Shown: positions 410 through 23,269 of the stretch, piece after piece
Numbering within the stretch: the stretch's first letter is position 1
Layout of the letters: each line of letters begins with the position of its first letter
Source of the DNA: Zygnema circumcarinatum SAG 698-1b
Taxonomy: Eukaryota > Plantae > Zygnematophyceae
NCBI GenBank assembly: GCA_037447605.1
Contig: CM074805.1
Span: 4,869,361-4,933,360 of the forward strand
Length of the DNA: 64,000 nt
Direction: 5' to 3'
Made by a program: the position numbers and the translations under genes
Notes under the pieces: generated by a model
What the model saw: the letters and a program-made list of their open reading frames with translations, nothing else
Databases searched by the model: none
What the model was told of the DNA's origin: nothing

Positions 410-1223
410 ATGGCTCTCAAGCAGGTTGTCCTCTTGCTCGCCCTCTTCTCCGTCGTCGCCCCGGCCTTCGCCGACGTGTCTACCTTTGTCTCTGAGAAGG
501 CTGGCAATGAGGAGCATGCCGGTCCCGAGGCCATCCCTGAGCGCGTGCAGAACATTTTGGACACCATCGCCGCCGCAGGAAAGTTCAGCAAGTTCGTGCA
601 CTTCGTGAAGCTGCTCGAGCTCGGCTCCAAGATCGGCGAACTCCGCGGAACCCTCCTTGTGCCCACCGACGAGGCCTTCTCTCTTGCTAGCGAGCAGATT
701 CAGGCAATCCTCTCCAAGTCGATCGGAGGAAATGGATTCACCCGTGGCCTTGACAATGTCCTCCTCAGCCACTTCATCAAGGACAGGATCACCCCTCAGG
801 TCCTTGAGGTCAGTCTTGTGCCCTCTCTGCTCTCTCTTATCCCTCACTTTTTAGCTTTTTACTATCAGATTATGACTTGAGGTCGAAATCTCGAGTGCTG
901 TATTGATTTAGCTTGGACCAACTGTGCAGGCTGCTGGAGCCGCCAGATTGAGGAGATTCAAGGCCACCGGCCCGAGCGCAATCATGTCAACCAGGAGTGT
1001 GTTCGGTGACCTCCCCGTCTCCGTTGTCAGCGACGGAATTGAGAACGGTTTCCTTGCTGTGAACACCGCTGAGGAGGATGTGGCGATGCTGACCACCCCT
1101 AACGTCTACGTTGACTTCAAGCTGGCGGTGCAGGGCGTGGACCGCCTGCTCTTGCCTTCGGAGAAGCTGGTTGCCGTTCAGGAAAAGATTAATGCGCAGG
1201 TTAGCGTTCAGGCTGCGAGTTAA
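410..1223 (+). CDS. Secreted fasciclin (FAS1)-domain protein A, FLA-like; 2 exons (410-808, 930-1223)
   Basis: Signal peptide MALKQVVLLLALFSVVAPAFA. FAS1 H1 motif TLLVPTDEAF, [YF]H-like LLSHFI, and H2 motif VYVDFKLAVQGVDRLLLP. Phase-0 intron GTCAGT(809)...TGCAG(929) joins the ORFs in frame. A possible extra donor at 1200 means the C-terminus could extend. Confidence 0.85.
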
Positions 1224-3738
1224 AATCTGGACAATGTAGTTGTTGAGGTTGGAAGGATTTTCGAATGTGATAGATAGTTGAGATCGGTACGGTATATTTA
1301 ATTTGCTCTCACTCAAGCAAAAAGGTACATAGCTTTAGCGCTTGGGTCGCAGCCTCTCGACAGGCTGAATAATAGCCCACATGATGATGTCGTCCGGTTC
1401 GTTAATAACTGTACCCCTCCGTCTTCAGAGAAGGTTTTGAAACGGAGAGTACGTTATATTCATCAGGTAGTGGGTAGGTCTATTCTCCATCCGATATGTA
1501 GTACGAAGATCGACTCTTATAAGTTACTCTCCGCTGTGAAATGTTTTCACATTTTAGAAATTATGTCAACCTGGGCAATTTTCTGCCTGTCTAATCTGAA
1601 AGTTTGTATCATTCATCACTTCTAGATTTTATGAAGGAAAAAAAGATGTGCTATGCCTTGGAATGATTTAACTATCGTTGATTTCAGTGTGTTAATCATT
1701 CTGTTTCTGGGAGTCTGCCTCTATAGCCGTCCAATATTAGTAGGTTCTTGGAACTGTTATTCTAAATTGGCTTACAGTTTTGAAGTTGTCATAAAATTTC
1801 GTGGGGATATCGTGGCGGATGTTTGGTAATAGGTAGGAAAACAGGAAATAGCGTCTGTCATGAAAAACGGCCCTCAATACATTCGATATGTGAAATATAC
1901 AACAAGCACGGCGAAGTTGGCTGAAGAGAAATCTTCTCCAAAAAATGAAACCCATTTTTCGTCCGTCTTCAACTATTGCTGAACTTCCGTTGTGGATTAT
2001 GAAACTTGAGAATGATTGCGTTTCTGCTGACGGAAAGAGAGCCATTATTAGAAAAACTAAATCTTCCGAAGCAAACACAAGGACGCAGCTCCCCGTAGCA
2101 ACATCGTGATGTGATCGTGCATTTGATTAAAATCCGTGAAATTTAAGACCTTCGAACAGGCTTTAAATCCAACATCCTACATTCCTGTCCATACTGGAAC
2201 ATTAGATCGTAAGAAATTTTTGTCGCATGCATGGCCCGCCGCCTCAACAGCCGCCAACGTCGCATCGGATAAAATCAAAAGGTGACAAAGCAATCAATTA
2301 ATAATGAACAAAAGAAATGGCGAGTCCTGTTCTAGCTCGCACTACAGCCAACCAGAGGCCATAGATCACGCGGGACCGTACGGACGGCGTTAGGGTCGCG
2401 GATTGGCGCTTGGCGCGTGTCTCGGGCCGTGTACCAAAGATGTCGTACGATACGGAACGGTTGAGATGCGGCCAAATAGCGTTGTAGAACTGCAGCTATA
2501 CGGCCCAAACCGACAAAGGTCCTGCGAGATGGGGCGGCATGTTTTCAGATCTGGAAACAATCAGTACGGACATAACACTTATACGACAAGCGGAATGTAC
2601 GAAACGGTACGGTTCTGTATGCCGTACTGCAATGCTGTTTTTCTGGGACCACACAAACGACAAAATTACAGTTACTGTACGGGGAAGGGTCATGGCGGGT
2701 GGGTCTGGTTTACGAAATTCAAGCAGCTCAAGTCAGCGAATTTTGTCGGTAGTGTGGGACCGCGCTACGCCGTCAGATTAGGGCGAAATGGTCAATCGGT
2801 CCGTTTGGAGCGACCCACGTGGCGACTTCTGGCAAGGTGGCGTCGCTTTCTGGCGAGGCGGGCGGTGGCTGTCTGAGGGGCCGAAATGGGACCGGGCAGA
2901 CCATGAAGGAGAATAAAAAATTTCTTGAAAAAGTTTAGGATCCGACATCGTAGCAAGCCAAAGTCTAGGAAGCTTTCTGTGGATGGACCTGGATGAGATT
3001 CCGGCCAGATCCAGATAATTTTGTCACGGGAACTGGTATCCAAAAACATTTTTTTTTTTTAAATTTGTTTGGACGACAAGAAAAAGAATATTGATGTGAC
3101 TGTCGACCAAAGGCGGTTCAAAAAATAAAAAATAAAATCAGGAAAAATGGGCTTTACCAAAATGTCACATGCCCAAACAATAATTCGCTACAGCCAGCGA
3201 GACCTTCGCCAACTGGACAAAATCCGTACAAGTATAGCCTTGTTCTGGCGCTCAAAATTCTCATTCCCGTTATTTCCGTATACTGTACCGTGAAGTAGAC
3301 ATGTTCAACCTCAGATCTACCGTCGAGAAAGATCCAAAGTTCTCACCGACATCCACCGACATACACCGACATTTCCACGAGAATTTTTTTTTAAACTTCA
3401 GATCGCGAACCAGTTGGAGCAGAGGAAGGGCCCCTCTGGCCGGCAACCAAATGGTACGGCCGCCAGGTGGCGCCCTCAACGGCGGCATATTCGTCGCTAT
3501 TCACCGACATTTTCGCCCTGTGGCGTGGGAAGGCGCAAGCCGGGACAGGCCGGGCTGTTAGGTGCCATTAATTTATGCCGTGTCGTTTAGCGCCTTCTAT
3601 TCGTACGATTGTACAACCACTGTACGGTCGCCGGACTCCCGGAAATTCCCGCGGCGCACAGCCGTCCGGTGTCCGCGCCTGACAAAAAATTGTCCCGAAA
3701 AAGAAAAGAAGAAGAATTGCGGGACCGATCCGCGCCTC

Positions 3739-3967
3739 TGATTGGCCGCGCCTTGGACGGCGGCAAGTAGCGCTTTCTGATTGGCCGAGCGCCGCCAGCC
3801 GGCCCCTTCCCGGCCTCTGATTGGCCGAGCCCTGCCAGGACGCCCCTGCCATTGCTCAAACGTGCGTCGCTGATTGGCTCCGCGCCTCACGGAGCCACAG
3901 ATCTACGCTCTGATTGGCCAGCGCTTCGGAATTGTCCCCGCGCCTGGGCGCACTGTGCCCTGATTGG
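3739..3967 (-). promoter_or_regulatory. Array of six CCAAT boxes (TGATTGG on +) upstream of FAS1 gene B
   Basis: TGATTGG at 3739, 3778, 3818, 3871, 3911 and 3961 in GC-rich context, ending ~190 bp before the ATG at 4154. Confidence 0.65.
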
Positions 3968-4153: not shown

Positions 4154-6306
4154 ATGGCAGGCAAGGCTTTTCTGGTTGTAGTGTTGGTGGCGGCAGTGAG
4201 CCAGTTGGCATCCGCCGGGGAGGCATGGAAGCTTCCCCAGTTCCGTGCGATGAAGACTGTGGCAATGCCCACGAAGGGAGCCGTCTCGGAGAGGTCCGAG
4301 ATCATCCTGGAGAGCATTGCGGAGGCGGGCCCGTTCAGCAAGTTTGTCAACTTTGTGAAGCTTCTGGAGCTGTCCGGGAGGCTCGATGTGATGAATGGCA
4401 CCGTTCTCGTACCCACCGACGATGCATTCTCACTCGCTAACGATGCCATTCAGAAGATCTTGTCTGACACCTCGGATGCGAGCTACACCACTCAGCTGGA
4501 CAAGCTCTTGTCTTCCCACTTCCTTCGTGATCGCCTCACTCAATCTGCAATGCAGGTTGCCATTCTTACCCTTATCCCCATTTCGTTCTATTCGCCCGCA
4601 CATTTACTGCATCTTTTAAGGGCGTATCCCCCCCCTGTTCCCCTCTTGCCTTAACGCAACTCAGTAACCTTTTTTTCCTGCAGGCACTTCGCGCTGCTCC
4701 CGTGACCCGCCGCTTCCACAGGACAGGTCCTGCCACCGTGATGTCGACCGCGACGGCGTTCTCTGACATCGCCGTTTCAGTGGTGTCAGACGGCGCCGAC
4801 CAGGGCTTCTGCATGGGCGCCGCCGATGCCGAGAACGTGGCCCTTGCGACCCTTCCCGACCTGTACGTCGACCACCGTCTGAGCGTACAGGGCGTGGACC
4901 GCGTCCTCCTCCCCCGGACAGAGGCAGCCATGGACTTGGTCCGCCGCCAGCTCCTGCCGCTGGACGTGTCTCCCCTCTTGACCGCTTCTGTGAAGGCGGG
5001 TCGTGTCGCTGACCCCCCGAAGGCCGCCAAGCCCCCTCCTCCTTCACCTCCCCCGCCGCCACCTCCCAGCCCGCCCCCCCCTCCTCCCATCAGCAACTAC
5101 CGTGAGTTTTCCATTGTAGATCTGCCGAAGTTCATTGAGCTGACGTTTCAGTTACTATTTTTTTTCTACTGTTGCTTTTTTATAATGCCTTTTCCCGTTG
5201 TGTGCAGTTCCTCTTTTTGTCAAATCTGTCGGCAAGAATGTCGACGGTGGCGTTATTGCGAATATCAAAGTCGCTTCTGCGGCCTCCATTAACCTCGGGT
5301 GCGCGAAGCTATGCTTCGAGAATCCACTTTGTGTTCTCTTTACCTTCAATCTTAAACTTCTGAGGTGTTACTTGAAGAGCTCTTCGCCAGTTCTCAAGTC
5401 TTTGGTCGGTACCGACACCTACGTGAAAATTGGTGAGTTTTCTCGTCATTCTGTTTTTCGCACTTCATCACATTCTCCATGGAACCCTTCATTGCGTGGA
5501 ACCCTTCAACCCTTCACCCTTCTAACGTGTTATTGCTCTCTGTCGCAGTTCCTCCCCCTCCTCCGTCCCCACCTCCTCCGTCCCCTCCTCCCCCTTTCGT
5601 CACCCCTCCTCCTCCCTCCCCTCCCCCTCCCAGATCTACCGACAGATTCAACATCCCCCTTGTCGGGTACACAGTGGAGTCCGATGTCTCCGGTGGCATT
5701 ATTCGCAGCACCGGCAAGTGCCGCAATCAGGCGCAGATCAGCAGCCGTTTTGCGTTCACCATGGCGGCCGGCAATAAGTGCACTCTCAAGGGCTCTCAGC
5801 TGTCGGACCCTCCAGTTCCACTTCTCAGCTTGAAGAAGGCTGAAGGAACCGTGACTTACGCGAGTATTCCTGGCAGTAAGTTTCGCCCGATCATTATTTA
5901 TTGGTTGGTTGCTGGGTAGTTCTCGAGCCTCGGTGCTATTTTGACATCATTTTTCTGGGATGTGCAGGCAGACAGGGTCGATTGCAGTTTGTGTTGCCTT
6001 GGTGGGATTCTTTGTAACATCCCTCTTTCGTGATGTGCAGTGAAGCAAGTGTTCGACAGGCAGGAGGGTATCAACTGGGGTCTCGGACGTTACGTCTTCA
6101 GGAAGAACAATACTCTTTTTGGCTGCTACAAGAGGTGTTTCATGGATCCGGATTGTGATATGTTCTACGCGTACAAAGTCGAGCCTTATGGTACCCCTGA
6201 CGCGTGGAGTGCCTGCAAATTTTATGCGACTGCTTACACTGACGATAGTCAGATTCCAGTTGCACCATACAAGGGAATCTCTTATTTGAAGATCTTCTCG
6301 TCTTAG
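4154..6306 (+). CDS. Secreted FAS1 / Ser-Pro(4+) extensin-like / PAN-Apple chimeric protein; exons 4154-4555, 4684-5101, 5208-5432, 5549-5875, 6041-6306
   Basis: Signal peptide, then FAS1 motifs TVLVPTDDAF, LSSHFL and LSVQGVDRVLLP. Two SPPPP(P) tracts. PAN-like Cys patterns CAKLCFENPLCVLFTFNLKLLRCYLKS, a degenerate KCRN..FAFTMAAGNKCTLKG, and CYKRCFMDPDCDMFYAY..CKFY. All introns are GT-AG with consistent phases (0,1,1,1). Confidence 0.8.
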
Positions 6307-8365: not shown

Positions 8366-10627
8366 ATGAGTGCATTTGCTGAACGTAATTTCTTCACGTT
8401 TTCAGTTTTTTTTGTTATTTTTTCATCACTTTGCCATTTTAGGGGCAGCGGCGCCGCCCTCAATAGAGGGCCTTCTGGAGGCGGTTCATCTACAGGTGGT
8501 GAAGTGGCTATACAGGATGAGGATATACGAGTTTAAAAAAAATAAAAATGAAATTCTCTCAATGTTCAGAGAATCAGCGAATGAGTTCAGGTCTGAGGTC
8601 AAATGTCGGAATAAATTGCTGCTATTCATTTTTTTTTTAAATTTCGAGCTTCCAATGAAAGGAAATATCAACCTGTAATGCAAACATTTGATGAGGAAAG
8701 AGAAACTCACCTGTAAAGTACGCTTTTTCAGAATTTAAAAAAAAGAAAACAACAAGGAAGAAAGAGAGGCCTGACCCTCGAATCCCTCGAATTTAAACCT
8801 AAAACTGGGCAGATTATTATGTGCAGATTTTCCCTCTCGCATTATCCGCGCTTCACTGCGCGACGAGAGAGGGAGGAGGTGGGAGGGATGGGGGACCGGC
8901 CTCGCATGGTGTGACACCTGTCACGCCTGTCAAGCCTGTCACGTGTTGGGATGCTTTTTTAGGGTTCCAAAGAGGGAGAAAGGTCGGCTTGAAGGGACCG
9001 TGAGAAGTTGTTGGGGTTCAGGGGGTGGGAGGGTTGTAGAGAGTTGGCATTCAACTTTTGCATTCGTTTGGAATACATGGGAATTAACTTTTTAAAAGTT
9101 TAAATTTTGACTTTTTTGATTCTTGGAAATTTGAAGGAAGAGTGAGTTTGCTGATGTGAACTAACATAAGTTTTTGCACTGCCTTTTTTCTGGTTCCTGG
9201 CAGGTGGGCGAATTTTGCCGGAGGCTTGCCAGAAGCAAATCAAAATGCAATTCTGGACCTCCTTTTTGATGCGGATCACGGTGGCCTCGGTCTGAACTTT
9301 GTTCGGTACAACATCGGGGCCGGATTCAATGCATCTGTCGACCCTCAATTCCTCGCTTGCCCCTTGTGCTTTCTGTGCCTGCCCGGCTTCAAAAAATTTC
9401 CCGACGGCCCCTACAATTGGTCCTCGGATTCCAACCAGCGCACCATTCTTTTGGGAGCCCAAAAAAGAGGCGCAAATCTCTTCGAAGCAGTTTCATATTC
9501 CCCCCTTCCATGGATGACTCGGAGCGGTTCCGTTACCGGCAACACGGAATGGCACGAAGAAAATCTGAATCCTGAATACGAAGAAGAGTATGCAGAATAT
9601 TTGGCAGAAGTTGTGAGGGAGTACAGAGACAACCCTGCATGGAACATCGAGTTCCGTTCTCTCGCTCCGTTTAACGAGCCCATGGAAGGGTGGTGGGTGT
9701 TGGGTAACCGCCAAGAGGGCTGCAATTTCTCCCCATCTTCTATAGACAGAGTGGTGCAGAAGATTCACGCTGCCTTAAGGAGGAAGAAACTGCGTACAGG
9801 TGTGAGCATTGCAGATTCATGGCTCCAACATACATGGAGATTGGTTTCAAATTTGAGTGAAGCCGGCTTAAACTCCTTCTCGCAACTCAATGTGCATTCC
9901 TATGGTGCGTCCGACGCTTTACAGAATACTGAAACGGAACGGAGCCTGCGATTGCTGTTGTCGGATACGGCGAAACGTCTTGGAAAGGGTTTATGGCAGA
10001 CGGAGATGGGCCCGCTGGGGTTCAGCGTGGAGGGGGAAATGATGGTGGGGTTGGAAATCGCGCGATACATCATGCTGGATGTGAACCAGGTGAAATCACA
10101 ATTTTTCAAACCCGACAATCATGGGCTTACACAAAACTTTCAAACAAATTGCACGAGGAATTCGTTATTTACAAGTGTTAGGAGCAGTTATTCGAAAATC
10201 GTAAAAAACTCTAAAATGTAATCAAAAAACTAAACCCTCCGTCATGTGAAAATGATGAACTCCCTATAAATTGTCTGCCGCCTGTTATTGACGATTAGTC
10301 TGTTTCAAGCACATATGCTTTGGTTCGAAAGGTTTTTGAATTCTGCGATCGGCGGCTTGTTTTAACTCCCATAAAAAACCTGGTTCGTTTGACAGTTACA
10401 GGTCTCCGCCTGGGCGTACTGGCAAGCGGTAGAGCAGCCCAATTCCGCAAATTGGGGCTTCCTTCATGTTCTGTACGATTACTCGCAGCCCTTCCAAGTG
10501 CAGGTCACAAAGCAGTTCTACATAATGGCGCACTTCTCAAGGTGCGCTTCCGCCTCGCCCACCCGCTTCCTTCCTTTCAAAAGTTTCCTGAGAGCGACTG
10601 AGTGCGAGAGAGAGAGGGAGAGAGAGC

Positions 10628-13758: not shown

Positions 13759-14164
13759 GCCCCCTTGTAATCGAGCCCCACTTTATTTTGACATGGGAGG
13801 GATGGGGCACAAGCCTTTGCTGGTACTTTCCGTAAATTTTTATGCCTCCCATTCAGTTTCTGCCGCACTTTTGTACTATTTTTTCAATTTACTCAAATTG
13901 TCATCAATTGAATGAGTTACCTATGTTTCATTCATGTTGTCAAGTTTCTCCCCCTCTTGGAACTTGATATTCAGCTTATGTCCCTCTGTTCTCTTGCCCT
14001 CTTCCTGCTCTCTCTCCTTCCTCCTCTCTCTTCTCCTTCTCTTCCCTTTACTCACCTCCTCTCTCTCCATTCTCTACTCTCATCTTTCTCTTTACTCTCG
14101 TTTCACTCTCCTCTCTCTTCTCTCTTTATGTGCCCTCCACCTCCTTCCCCCCCATCTCTACCTG

Positions 14165-14237
<73 letters not shown>

Positions 14238-15921
14238 TATTTATTTAAGGCGTGTTTATCTTTTGGCAGGTGGGCCCACTTTTTGGGGGGCAGACCTCAG
14301 GCGGACTACGACAAGATTTTGGACCTTTTTTTCGACCCCAAAATCGGGCTCGGACTGAACATTGTTCGATACAACATTGGCGGCGGGCCCCCTCCCTCCG
14401 TCAAAGAAAATATTACATTCAAAGTCCCCTCTGAATTTAAAGCAATTCCCGGATTTAAGGAATCAGAGGCAGTTCCGTACGACTGGTCATCAGACGAAAA
14501 CCAGAGAAAAATTTTACTCGCTGCCCGGACCAGGGGAGTAAATATTGTTGAAGCATTTTCGAATTCGCCTCCGCATTGGATGACGATAACGGGCTCCTGC
14601 ACGGGCGGCTGGAATTTCGGAGCGGAAAATTTGAAAAATGAATATTTTACGCTTTTCGCCGATTACCTGACCGAGGTTGTAAAGTATTATAGGGACAATT
14701 TCGGAATTATTTTCCAATTTTTGGAGCCGTTCAATGAACCCGACGAGGGATGGTGGGTTGTTGGGGGGAGTCAAGAGGGTTGCAATTTTTCTCCGGGCAG
14801 CATGGACAAAATTTTGCCGTTGGTAGCCAAATCTTTGACCGAAAAGGGGCTCGAGACGAAAATAAGCGGCGTCGATTCTTGGGTCCAAAACACTCCCCGA
14901 ATTTTTGCTGCCTTTTCTCCGGAAACAGTTTCCGTAATACGGCAAATTAACGTGCATGGATATTACACGTTTTCACCTGACTCAAGCAGCCGAGGGGAAA
15001 AAAGACGCAATGCATTTTTTCGGAAAAAAATGCGAGAATTGGCAGCAGGGATGAAAAAGAGCCTGTGGCAGTCTGAGGCAGGGCCGATGAATCTCGGCGG
15101 CCAATCAGAGCTCAAAGTGGCCCTCCAAATTGCGCTGAATGTCACAATGGACATTAACCAGGTAGGTAATTGGATGACCCTTCCTTTTTTTTTTTTTTTT
15201 TTGAGGTGTTTTGTATTTTTGGGCATGTATAAGAGGGCAATGTTGTTATTTTTTATGATATCAGATGCATGCGAGGGCGTGGATCTACTGGCAAGCATTG
15301 GAAGTTCCAAGTGGCAACTATTGGGGTCTCATAAAGGCGCCGTTTTCTCGGTCGGAGCCGTTCAGTTTCAGTATTCAAAAACAGTTCTATGTTCTCATGC
15401 ACTTCTCCAGGTGCCTCCTCCTCCTCCTACAAACTATCGTTTTTGGATCAACGAATGGCTGTGAAAACTATTTTTCTATGGAAAGGAGAGAGAGGGGGGG
15501 GGAGGGAGGGAGAGGCCATTTTGTGTGTGCACTCTACTGGGTGTGTTTTCACACTTCTACCCCCTTTTTTCCGGTGTTTTGCAGATGGGTTCGGGCTGGA
15601 AGCAAAATTTTGAAGGTGCCCGTGGCGCTAGATGACCACGTATTGGCCGCATTTGACCCGGAAAAGTCTATTTTGGTCATTGTGGTGACTAACATCAGCC
15701 AGGAGTCCCCTTTGGCCCCCACTCTGCAGCTGCGAGGGTTCGGGTCCACCCCGGATGGGGCCAAAGTCAAAGTCAACGCGTTTTGCACTTCGGCGACGGC
15801 CAACTATTCGCCGGTGCAGCCTGCCGCTGACGTGTGCCCTCTTCCAGGGGCACTCCAAGTCAACTGCCCGAAAGAAGCCATCATGACATACGTCCTGCAT
15901 GATGTGCGCCTTTTAGAGTAG
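13759..15921 (+). CDS. GH30 subfamily 5 endo-beta-1,6-galactanase-like protein B; exons 13759-13822, 14270-15161, 15265-15410, 15585-15921; 5' exon(s) unresolved
   Basis: WEGWGTSLCWWAHFLGG, LGLNIVRYNIGGG, FSNSPPHWM, LEPFNEPDEGWW...QEGCNF, NVHGY, LWQSE, AWIYWQ...YWG. Intron positions and phases match gene A. Candidate upstream exons ~13284-13410 and 13475-13534 encode a hydrophobic segment, but no start ATG was found. Confidence 0.88.
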
Positions 15922-20454: not shown

Positions 20455-20825
20455 TGTTAGCCGTACTATTCGTACTAACCGTACTAACCGTACTAACCGT
20501 ACTTCCCGTACTAGCTGTACTAGCCGTCACGGGCTTACGCAAAAGCGGCAAAACTCACCTATTCTCCCCGCATGTGCCGCCGTAAGAGGCGCTCGCTCTT
20601 CTCCACTTCTTCTTGGCTTCGATACGATACGATACGCTCCGATACGGTACTATCCGTACTAGCCGTACGAGCTGTAGTAGCCGGGCTCGAAGCTTTTTGG
20701 TTTGCTGCCTCAGTAAACGCTAAGGCGTGCTTCATGTACTGTATGCGGTTTGCCACGATACGCTACGGTACGACGCGGTGCGATATTAAAGCAAACGATA
20801 TGATACGATACGATACGATATGTAC
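20455..20825. repeat. Short tandem repeats (CCGTACTA[A/G])n and (GATAC)n
   Basis: cgtactaaccgtactaaccgtactaaccgtact at ~20471-20503; gatacgatacgatac at ~20621 and ~20798-20820. Confidence 0.7.
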
Positions 20826-20887
20826 GGACATACATGAACTCTAACATAATTCCGCTCGCCTATTGGTAACACGGACCTTATATTTGC

Positions 20888-21774
<887 letters not shown>

Positions 21775-21817
21775 CAGAAGGGCGCGCAGGGCGAGCGAGT
21801 GAGACCCTACTCGCAGC

Positions 21818-23269
21818 ATGACGACCTGGATCCCGACGAAGGAGAATGGCGAAGTCTCCCGCAATCCATGGCGGCTGACCTCCATTCTTCTGGCCGTCGC
21901 GATGCTGCTCTATGCGGGCATCGCCTTCATCGGGTACAGCTTCCTGCGCTCGCGGCCATTGGAGGGGCCGCCGGCCGCACAGTGGCCCATGGCGGGGGGG
22001 CACAGGAGGGAGGGGGAGCTCTCGGAGCAGCTGCACCGCCTGCTGGTCGCGCAGGGCCTGGCGGGGCCGCGGGCGGGGAGGGAGAGGGAGAGGGAGAGGG
22101 AGGCGAGGCTGAAAGTGATGGTGGTCAACAGCGTTCCGTGGCACAACGAGGTCGTGTTCTGGCTCGTGTACACGCTCCGATTGGTTCCGAATTTGGATCT
22201 GACGGCGTACAATAACTGGAAGAAGTACGGGGCGAAGCAGTTTGTGGAGAAGATCGATTGGCCAAAAAAGTTCAAGATTCGACCCATCGCCGACTTTGAA
22301 GCTGAGGTCTCCGCTGAGAATAATAGTCCTGACGTGCTGTTTCTGGCTACCTGTGGGAATGATATGGTGAATATCGGCGCGAATTTGACGAAGATGCTAA
22401 TGCTGAACCCTAATTTGAGATTGATCTGTATCAGCCATCATCCTGAGCTTATCTTAGACAACGCCGAAGCGCTTCTGCCTTTTGCGAAGGCTAAAGCGCT
22501 GACTTTCATCAGCTTGGCGCCTCATGTAGCGGAATTTGTGAGAAAAAATATCATTCCTGATCTGGTGCAGACCTCTCCTCATTTCGCCCATGTTCCAAAC
22601 CTGCATGCTGCTGCCACCTTCATATATGAGCCCATGTTTCCCTGCCCTCGAGACATGTCGGAAGTCTACCCCGCCGATTTTCCGAAAGGCACTTCTTGTT
22701 TTAGCGACTTTGCCATTCAGGGAAAGGTGGAACTTCACCGACGAAATTACACGCGAGTACTTCGAGGACTGAGTGAGAAGCTGAAAAAGCGACCAAAAAA
22801 GTGGCAATCTTTTCATCTCAACCTGTTGGGGGTCAGTGAGCCGAACACGACGCTTCCGAAACTTTTTGGTAAGAAGTTGAGGTTTTTCGACGGGCTTGAT
22901 TACAAGGAGTTTTATGGGAAGCTGCATCATAATGCAGCTTTGTTGCCGGCATTTCGTTTGGAAGCTTATTACCTCAATATCTCGACCTCCACAGCAGCCG
23001 CTTCACTCATCTCAGGTGTTCCCATCATAGCGGATCAGAGGTTCCTCAAGACTTACAATTTCTTCGAGGAGGATAATGTCTATCTGCAGGAGGAGGGTGA
23101 GGCTGAAGCGGACACAATTGAGCGGATTAGGAGTTTAAGTATGGCTGAAGTCGTAGAAAGGAAGACGAGGCTCGCTGAATTAAACCTGAGGTTGATTATA
23201 AAAAATGTCCACCAGTTTAGGTCACTTATCAGAGGAGAGGACGTGCACAAAATGATACCTGCTGTCTAA
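21818..23269 (+). CDS. Intronless type II membrane protein, putative GT-B-fold glycosyltransferase, 483 aa
   Basis: Short cytosolic tail, one TM (ILLAVAMLLYAGIAFIGYSFL), a stem, then a globular alpha/beta domain. Motifs VMVVNSVPWHNEV, ICISHHP, ISLAPHV, FAIQGKVELHRRNY and a C-terminal LLPAF..AYY..STSTAAASLISGVPIIAD resemble the donor-binding helix of GT-B enzymes. The family is not assigned. Confidence 0.6.
   Translation: MTTWIPTKENGEVSRNPWRLTSILLAVAMLLYAGIAFIGYSFLRSRPLEGPPAAQWPMAGGHRREGELSEQLHRLLVAQGLAGPRAGREREREREARLKVMVVNSVPWHNEVVFWLVYTLRLVPNLDLTAYNNWKKYGAKQFVEKIDWPKKFKIRPIADFEAEVSAENNSPDVLFLATCGNDMVNIGANLTKMLMLNPNLRLICISHHPELILDNAEALLPFAKAKALTFISLAPHVAEFVRKNIIPDLVQTSPHFAHVPNLHAAATFIYEPMFPCPRDMSEVYPADFPKGTSCFSDFAIQGKVELHRRNYTRVLRGLSEKLKKRPKKWQSFHLNLLGVSEPNTTLPKLFGKKLRFFDGLDYKEFYGKLHHNAALLPAFRLEAYYLNISTSTAAASLISGVPIIADQRFLKTYNFFEEDNVYLQEEGEAEADTIERIRSLSMAEVVERKTRLAELNLRLIIKNVHQFRSLIRGEDVHKMIPAV

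Follow-up and report, generated by a model that had tools for sequence, protein, structure and literature searches.

A gene of five exons, on the plus strand of the window (the whole 64-kb stretch of DNA that was analysed), joins a signal peptide and a FAS1 domain to two extensin-type proline spacers and to PAN/Apple modules. On balance, we favor the reading that the gene encodes a secreted wall glycoprotein of ~545 residues without a GPI anchor, whose PAN modules would bind glycans and tether the FAS1 head; the glycosylation of the protein, its location in the wall, and its ligand we infer. The preliminary description of this DNA had spoken of a secreted modular chimera, and the components on which that claim was built are all there: a signal peptide, a FAS1 domain (Pfam), SPn spacers, and, in exon 3, a PAN/Apple domain (Pfam). 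The predicted combination of a FAS1 head, extensin-type rods, and PAN/Apple modules implies that FAS1 proteins of this lineage, that of a green alga closely related to the land plants, need not be fasciclin-like arabinogalactan proteins (FLAs).

Gene structure

The gene model consists of the following parts:

4154..4555, plus strand: exon 1, with the start codon, a signal peptide at about residues 1-21 (ASA/G, by inspection), and the N-half of FAS1, including the motifs H1 (TVLVPTDDAF) and SSHF (YH-like)
4556..4683, plus strand: intron 1, phase 0, GT..AG with the donor GTTGCC, interrupting the FAS1 domain
4684..5101, plus strand: exon 2, with a divergent FAS1 C-half ending ...VQGVDRVLLP, a linker of ~35 aa and, at the exon end, spacer 1 (P4-S-P7-S-P6)
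5102..5207, plus strand: intron 2, phase 1, GTGAGT..GCAG
5208..5432, plus strand: exon 3, PAN/Apple module 1, with four Cys and the core GCAKLCFENPLC...RCYLK, symmetric 1-1
5433..5548, plus strand: intron 3, phase 1, GTGAGT..GCAG
5549..5631, plus strand: exon 4, first part, spacer 2 (P5-S-P4-S-P4-FVT-P4-S-P4)
5632..5875, plus strand: exon 4, second part, an 81-aa module with two Cys, candidate PAN
5876..6040, plus strand: intron 4, phase 1, GTAAGT..GCAG
6041..6306, plus strand: exon 5, closing with a TAG stop at 6304-6306; four Cys, probably PAN/Apple module 3

All four introns are of the GT-AG type with acceptors ending in GCAG, and the proposed reading frame is the best plus-strand frame in each of the five exons. 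Introns 2-4 are all in phase 1, which, by arithmetic on the lengths, makes exon 3 (225 nt) and exon 4 (327 nt) symmetric 1-1; the codons split at these junctions are CTT, GTT, and ATG. The exon lengths sum to a product of 545 aa, which is conceptual only; single exons or exon pieces served as the queries of the domain searches and fold predictions. GC3 of the exons is higher than the GC of the introns, and intron 2 has a GC of 0.38 against 0.46-0.69 in the adjoining exons.

Other ways of splicing the locus lead to stops. The sole other acceptor before the exon 4 module, AG at 5632-5633, shifts the frame and gives a stop at 5833, an alternative acceptor of intron 4 at 5966 also runs into a stop, and the five-exon path is the only route through the locus that preserves the open reading frame. 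Spacer 2 must be coding, since with any acceptor other than that at 5548 the module of exon 4 would be out of frame. Supported by splice sites, phases, and frames, the five-exon model holds up and looks internally intact; both the exon structure proposed earlier and the proposal that phase-1 introns flank the added modules agree with the sequence.

FAS1 head and upstream paralogue

In exon 1, Pfam Fasciclin (PF02469) scored 32.1 bits (cut-off 22; 1.5e-7) over profile positions 3-72 of 123, and a custom FAS1 profile matched with 2.2e-16 over positions 5-85 of 146, the match stopping at the exon end. It is the N-half in exon 1 that passes the family cut-off; the C-half in exon 2, scored separately, gave no significant FAS1 match with Pfam, phmmer, or the custom profile, and VDRVLLP, within VQGVDRVLLP, is the only H2-like motif visible in it. 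Judged by its sequence, the FAS1 head is divergent and without a close relative: a full HMMER search with exon 1 in a representative library of 1.84 billion proteins returned 28 generic multi-FAS1 matches, the best at 39% identity, and those with names (Limulus, Anaerolineae, and Methanosarcinaceae) are uninformative on origin. An AstaP-like, carotenoid-binding role for the domain was considered and rejected, no solved FAS1 structure, AstaP included, matching better than E 0.1.

A tandem paralogue lies 2.9 kb upstream, and the promoter of the chimera gene carries a regular array of short boxes:

410..1223, plus strand: FAS1-only tandem paralogue of two exons (410-808 and 930-1223) with an intron at 809-929; Fasciclin 2.1e-6
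3738..3967, plus strand: promoter array, made up of six CTGATTGG boxes (CCAAT in inverted orientation) at intervals of 39-53 nt

The paralogue is of the secreted type and has neither spacers nor PAN. It is 52% identical to the chimera in exon 1 (8e-32), its exon 2 is 55% identical to that of the chimera over residues 9-77 (3e-26), and the position of intron 1 within FAS1 is common to both genes. With the exception of this paralogue, tblastn found no further copies of PAN or FAS1 within the 64-kb window. The two genes are also alike in their promoters, in which the CCAAT boxes align with each other: where 2.5 matches to CTGATTGG would be expected in the window, there are 13, a number reached by none of 100 shuffles. 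Six of the 13 fall into the array at 3738..3967, and another three precede the paralogue, at 47-159. An ERSE-like CCAAT-N9-CCACGT module was considered as a promoter element and, by eye, fits neither FAS1 promoter.

PAN/Apple modules

Exon 3 is solidly identified by profile and structure-database matches as a bona fide PAN/Apple module (PF00024/PF14295). It scored 28.5 bits with PAN_1 against a cut-off of 21.4 (1.3e-6) and matched PAN_4 with 3.4e-5 (Pfam); its four Cys stand at residues 31, 35, 41, and 54 of the exon; and its matches in the PDB were SML-2 (2yil, 1.9e-5) and TgMIC4 (4a5v, 9.8e-5) and also factor XI and prekallikrein. Exon 5 is probably a PAN/Apple module as well. Its core, GCYKRCFMDPDC...ACKFY, has four Cys and ~13 additional hairpin residues, and the pattern GCxxxCFxxPxC...C is common to exons 3 and 5. 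BLASTP aligned the cores of the two exons with 4e-5, the alignment z of 6.4 was reached by none of 3000 shuffles, and the factor XI apple score was 27.2 bits with a profile of exons 5 and 3 as against 17 bits with exon 3 alone. The neighbors of exon 5 in the ESM Atlas were PAN clusters at 0.95, with all ten of the best named matches being PAN. Searched alone, exon 5 had no match in the PDB and, sub-pieces included, none in Pfam.

The module in exon 4 may be a degenerate copy of the one in exon 3, which it resembles weakly along its whole length (z 4.4; 8 of 3000 shuffles scored as high). It has only two Cys and lacks the PAN consensus, it gave no Pfam match, sub-pieces included, and no recognized neighbors in the ESM Atlas, and its addition to the PAN profile weakened the profile; as a PAN module, it is a candidate only. 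Because the consensus is absent and the likeness to exon 3 weak, the number of three predicted modules is an upper bound, made up of one that is solid, one that is probable, and one that is unsupported. Of the up to three PAN/Apple modules counted in the preliminary description, exon 3 was thus upheld by Pfam and the PDB and exon 5 as probable, and the exon 4 module, which gives no family signal, was not. The HMMER searches proposed there had a similarly divided outcome, with Fasciclin on exon 1, PAN_1 and PAN_4 on exon 3, and no match for exons 2, 4, and 5 alone. The AlphaFold predictions had pLDDT values of 44 for exon 5 alone and 40.8 (AlphaFold2, three-row alignment) for the exon 4 module, and from neither can a PAN fold or its absence be read.

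The state of these modules bears on a rather unlikely alternative, in which part of the model is wrong or the tail is in decay. The product would then consist of FAS1 and spacer 1, for instance because intron 2 is retained, with exons 3-5 left as relics of a shuffled cassette, either not expressed or eroding. Intron 2 can indeed be read without a stop up to 5292, the PAN consensus is lost in the exon 4 module, and the codon usage changes along the gene, GC3 being 0.55-0.57 in exons 3 and 5, below the 0.72-0.76 of the FAS1 exons, and exon 5 having a codon score of about zero; sequence searches also found no orthologue and no RNA-derived sequence supporting transcription or the splice junctions. 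Erosion would, however, have to have spared the strong GT[AG]AGT donors, GCAG acceptors, and consistent phase of introns 2-4, all four core Cys and the stop-free frame of exons 3 and 5, and the agreement of proposed and best plus-strand frame in every exon; and 106 nt, the distance from exon 2 to exon 3, is too little for an intergenic region.

Proline-rich spacers and protein class

Both spacers, of ~25 aa each, have a period of 15 nt, or five codons; between them, the SP4+ motif occurs five times and TP4 once. Their proline runs are of the contiguous SP4-7 and TP4 types and include no AP/SP/TP arabinogalactan glycomodules, and Tyr cross-linking motifs (YXY and VYK) are absent from either spacer. 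There is no transmembrane segment and, by inspection, no GPI signal, the C-terminus ...KGISYLKIFSS ending without a hydrophobic tail. The many SP3-5 repeats and Tyr motifs of a classical extensin were not found, and the protein fits only the chimeric or short extensin-like class. From its sequence, the predicted protein is a FAS1-headed chimeric extensin-like protein and not an FLA because its SP4-7 stretches are not AGP motifs and it has no GPI signal, a feature frequent in FLAs and not obligatory. This agrees with the earlier view that the protein falls outside the FLAs, since both the AG glycomodules and the GPI signal are absent.

The protein nevertheless has much in common with land-plant and green-algal FLAs: it would be secreted and has a single FAS1 domain, in which H1, [Y]H, and H2-like motifs can be recognized, with a Pro-rich region of the O-glycosylation type behind it. 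FLAs are defined by an AGP region with AP/SP/TP glycomodules, and the family expands through tandem duplication (PMC6514703). The chimera differs from them in its contiguous, extensin-type SP4-7, its PAN modules, and the missing GPI signal. With chimeric extensins and extensin-like HRGPs, such as the LRR-extensins, it shares the combination of globular binding domain(s) and SPn rods in a secreted, modular protein, and PMC11839794 cites algal chimeric extensin-like proteins. Unlike these, it has few proline motifs (five SP4+ and one TP4), confined to a pair of short spacers, and no Tyr cross-linking motifs, and our literature searches found no description of FAS1 and PAN as partners of chimeric extensins.

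On the side of the PAN modules, exon 3 matches in sequence the apple domains of Sarcocystis SML-2 (2yil) and Toxoplasma MIC4 (4a5v and 2ll3). Use of PAN/Apple modules for adhesion is a theme common to these two proteins and the oomycete CBEL, a PAN/Apple protein that binds Gal/GalNAc glycoproteins (PMC3532174). The likeness is one of overall sequence only. The PAN modules of exons 3 and 5 have just four Cys each as compared with SML-2, MIC4, and CBEL, and the company that the modules keep is different: the partner in CBEL is CBM1, and MIC4 and SML-2 have tandem apples only.

Relatives and described architectures

In land plants, PAN/Apple modules are known chiefly from G-type lectin receptor kinases, where they are part of the ectodomain. 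The combination of FAS1 and PAN is not described in the searchable literature, and none of the 28 FAS1 matches in the 1.84-billion-protein library carries PAN; this agrees with the statement in the preliminary description that the architecture was not recognized as described. Word-index protein searches with exons 1, 3, and 5 gave no match among proteins whose length was 0.55-1.75 times that of the exon, a range outside which full-length relatives fall. Metagenome scans had no match for an alignment of exon 1 and the paralogue and none for a 24-mer from exon 5, and the protein-library and metagenome searches together contained no orthologue, transcript, self-match, or FAS1+PAN relative.

Function and origin

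If the product is the secreted wall glycoprotein that we favor, its Ser-Pro stretches would be hydroxylated and arabinosylated and form stiff polyproline-II rods of ~8 nm each, and its PAN modules would attach to glycans or glycoproteins of the wall; the epitopes may be of the Gal/GalNAc type, as they are for the apple lectins of apicomplexans and for CBEL of oomycetes. In this way, the FAS1 head would be tethered or bridged in the wall or mucilage, with a role in adhesion or wall organization. Sequence likeness suggests galactose binding by exon 3, and does so only because the best solved relatives of the exon, SML-2 and TgMIC4, are Gal-binding apple lectins. Such a gene may have originated by tandem duplication of a FAS1-only gene, after which one copy gained phase-1 exons with a PAN (+SPn) cassette. 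The FAS1-only duplicate is a natural comparison for what the PAN tail may contribute, whether wall retention or a second ligand.

More tentatively, and with a probability that we place well short of even, the PAN (+ Ser-Pro rod) exons could be a mobile, exon-shuffled "wall-address" cassette that has been attached to many unrelated secreted heads in conjugating green algae. The locus would then hold a before-and-after pair, a FAS1 gene without the extension and its duplicate, located 2.9 kb downstream, that gained the cassette via phase-1 introns. If this were true, it would be a plant-lineage counterpart of the extracellular exon shuffling of animals and a testable means by which these algae choose the secreted proteins that are kept in the wall.

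The protein could also be a soluble multivalent lectin or agglutinin in the mucilage or medium, FAS1 and PAN cross-linking the glycans or glycoproteins that other cells or substrates carry, in gliding adhesion or the pairing of conjugation. Several putative binding modules, together with spacers free of Tyr cross-linking motifs and a chain free of GPI signal and transmembrane segment, would suit such an agglutinin, and AGP-type glycoproteins have reportedly been implicated in adhesion in Zygnematophyceae in one published study; the same sequence, however, fits the favored wall glycoprotein equally, and we regard a soluble lectin as unlikely.

The preliminary description had further linked the PAN modules to galactans trimmed by two neighboring GH30 enzymes, whose domain matches lie on the same strand as the chimera gene, about 2-3 kb downstream:

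9226-10218, plus strand: GH30_2 domain
14130-15461, plus strand: GH30_2 domain

The GH30_2 calls are real, and Gal-binding apple lectins are the closest solved relatives of exon 3, but a functional neighborhood of this kind is very improbable, adjacency being the sole link, functional gene clustering not being the rule in eukaryotic nuclear genomes, and the CTGATTGG arrays of the FAS1 promoters being absent from those of the GH30 genes, which have single copies only (8075 and 15101).

Elsewhere in the window, Pro-rich open reading frames at 20.8-22.1 kb were considered as extensin genes and rejected; they consist of simple repeats of the types (GGAGGGAG)n and (GA)n.

The Gene Model

We found that the five-exon gene proposed in the preliminary description reads exactly as it was given there, with coordinates 4154-6306 (+ strand); the architecture of the FAS1-PAN gene is real at the DNA level and the original observation largely right.

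Exons of the FAS1-PAN gene
4154-4555, + strand: exon 1, 402 nt
4684-5101, + strand: exon 2, 418 nt
5208-5432, + strand: exon 3, 225 nt
5549-5875, + strand: exon 4, 327 nt
6041-6306, + strand: exon 5, 266 nt, with the stop codon TAG at 6304-6306

Summed, the exon lengths give a product of 545 residues. All four introns (106-165 nt) start with GT and end in GCAG, and three of the four have a GT[AG]AGT donor. Intron 1 is in phase 0 and introns 2, 3 and 4 are all in phase 1, which makes exons 3 and 4 symmetric (1-1); the codons split by the phase-1 introns are CTT, GTT and ATG. With a codon table trained on coding sequence within the window, namely the GH30 ORFs and the upstream FAS1-only paralogue, the proposed frame scored highest among the three + frames in all five exons, and GC3 was 0.55-0.76 in the exons against a total GC of 0.38-0.48 in the introns.

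The proposed splice path is the sole one that preserves an open frame. Only two AGs within 5433-5640 are candidate acceptors, 5547-5548 and 5632-5633; use of the latter shifts the frame of exon 4, which then meets a stop at 5833, and an alternative acceptor for intron 4 at 5966 also encounters a stop. A reading of the exon 4 module in its best frame needs the acceptor at 5547-5548 and would therefore require the second proline stretch to be coding. Were intron 2 retained, the frame 4702-5292 would stay open and add a Phe/Cys-rich hydrophobic tail, with a stop at 5290-5292; this open frame is probably an accident of a T-rich intron and would give a different C-terminus.

Composition of the Predicted Protein

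Searches and family scans, done exon by exon, demonstrate a modular protein, predicted to be secreted, in which a FAS1 head is combined with SP4+ spacers of the extensin type and with three further modules, the first certainly PAN/Apple, the second degenerate and the third probably PAN/Apple. By inspection, the N-terminus in exon 1 is a typical signal peptide, its hydrophobic core preceded by a basic n-region and followed by ASA|G. The N-terminal half of FAS1, also in exon 1, matches Pfam Fasciclin at 32.1 bits (cut-off 22; profile positions 3-72 of 123), and a custom profile of 53 FAS1 domains taken from library matches gives 2.2e-16, the alignment terminating exactly at the exon end; the H1 motif reads TVLVPTDDAF and the YH motif is present in its SSHF version. 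Exon 2 alone, expected to hold the C-terminal half, had no significant match with Pfam or the custom profile and carries only VQGVDRVLLP at the position of the H2 motif; this half is 55% conserved with the paralogue.

The first spacer, ending exon 2, is P4-S-P7-S-P6, with about 35 linker residues behind FAS1, and the second, opening exon 4, is P5-S-P4-S-P4-FVT-P4-S-P4. Both have a period of 15 nt (five codons) and draw on several Pro and Ser codons, which sets them apart from the simple (GGAGGGAG)n and (GA)n repeats found at 20.8-22.1 kb. Motifs of the SP4 type undergo hydroxylation and arabinosylation and take a polyproline-II conformation; at about 25 residues, each spacer would form a polyproline-II rod of roughly 8 nm. 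A GPI anchor is unlikely, as the C-terminus lacks a hydrophobic tail.

Up to three PAN modules had been proposed, a count that exceeds the evidence: exon 3 is certain and exon 5 probable, and exon 4 is degenerate. Judged by its sequence, exon 3 is clearly a PAN/Apple module: it has the four-Cys core and matches Pfam PAN_1 at 28.5 bits (cut-off 21.4) and PAN_4 at 3.4e-5, and among solved structures it matches best the apple lectins SML-2 of Sarcocystis (2yil, 1.9e-5) and TgMIC4 of Toxoplasma (4a5v, 9.8e-5), with factor XI and prekallikrein next. Exon 5 alone has no match in Pfam or PDB. It is a probable third module because it shares the GCxxxCFxxPxCxxF core with exon 3 (BLASTP 4e-5; z 6.4, 0 of 3000 shuffles), because its neighbourhood in the ESM Atlas consists of PAN clusters (0.95), with PAN in all 10 of the best named matches, and because a joint profile with exon 3 finds PAN/Apple chains exclusively, a factor XI apple scoring 27.2 bits (E 3.7e-5) in place of 17; its fourth Cys sits behind an insertion of about 13 residues. 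The exon 4 module, 81 residues with two Cys behind the second spacer, gave nothing by BLASTP or Pfam and was not recognised in the ESM Atlas. It weakly resembles exon 3 over its full length (z 4.4; score reached in 8 of 3000 shuffles), sharing PLxxxxVxxxVxGGxI near its start and GTxTYxxI near its end. Its inclusion in the exon 3 profile brings the score against apple structures down from 26-28 bits to about 16; we regard the module as a candidate decayed copy of the PAN exon. AlphaFold pLDDT was 44 for exon 5 alone and 41 for the module of exon 4, which was run with an alignment of three rows.

An Unextended Duplicate

The most useful feature of the locus is the adjacent duplicate that lacks the extension. 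This FAS1-only paralogue lies in tandem, 2.9 kb upstream and also on the + strand (exons 410-808 and 930-1223), and encodes a secreted protein of 230 residues without proline spacers or PAN modules; identity to the FAS1-PAN gene is 52% in exon 1 and 55% in exon 2, and the position of the phase-0 intron is common to both. The similarity stops just past the H2-like motif, where the upstream copy terminates and the downstream copy continues into spacers and PAN modules. With such a duplicate next door, the gain of the PAN tail becomes testable. Both promoters contain arrays of CTGATTGG, an inverted CCAAT box, at 47-159 and 3738-3967 (+) with a spacing of 39-53 nt; nine of the 13 copies in the 64-kb window (2.5 expected) lie in these two promoters. 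The arrays are not the CCAAT-N9-CCACGT module. GC3 is 0.55-0.57 in the PAN exons (5208-5432 and 6041-6306) against 0.70-0.77 in the FAS1 exons of both copies, a weak hint that the appended exons may have another history or a less pronounced codon bias.

Function and Alternative Explanations

The protein differs from fasciclin-like arabinogalactan proteins (FLAs), and is not one of them, as AG glycomodules and a GPI signal are absent; nor is it a classical extensin, its repeats being few and Tyr cross-linking motifs absent. It can be placed among the chimeric extensin-like wall proteins, a broad class. In the part of the literature searched, we found neither a combination of FAS1 and PAN nor any wall proteins of streptophyte algae with PAN/Apple modules.

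The ligands of PAN/Apple modules are carbohydrates or proteins. In the oomycete protein CBEL, such modules accompany wall adhesion, and CBEL binds Gal/GalNAc glycoproteins (PMC3532174); the FAS1 domains of FLAs mediate adhesion and wall organisation (PMC6514703). On balance, we lean towards an adhesion or bridging protein resident in the wall or mucilage, in which the PAN tail would provide attachment and the FAS1 head a second interaction; the FAS1-only paralogue would be the free form.

The protein libraries searched contained no transcript-derived or annotated protein for either copy, and two metagenome scans gave no match. We take the absent transcript evidence as a mild sign of low or conditional expression and no proof of a dead gene; that the gene is truncated or decaying appears unlikely, and that its product is a soluble agglutinin somewhat less likely still. 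Least probable is functional coupling to the GH30 neighbours: the suggested link to galactans goes beyond the evidence, adjacency being the sole tie, and the downstream GH30_2 genes lack the CTGATTGG promoter array of the FAS1 genes.

Other features of the window
9226-10218, + strand: GH30_2 (PF14587) coding stretch, 1.2e-19
14130-15461, + strand: GH30_2 (PF14587) coding stretch, 1.5e-27
20786-22215, both strands: simple purine/pyrimidine repeat, (GGAGGGAG)n and (GA)n, about 1.3 kb

The ERER and THTH runs at the edges of the GH30_2 stretches come from the translation of (GA)n and (CA)n microsatellites. The simple repeat explains a spike in GC (0.60) and GC skew (+0.49), and its Pro-rich ORFs are not an extensin gene; the long minus-strand 'SLPPSLPP' ORFs are fake products of the repeat. 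A run of N at about 23.9 kb, seen as XXXX in ORF translations, is an assembly gap within another CT-rich stretch.
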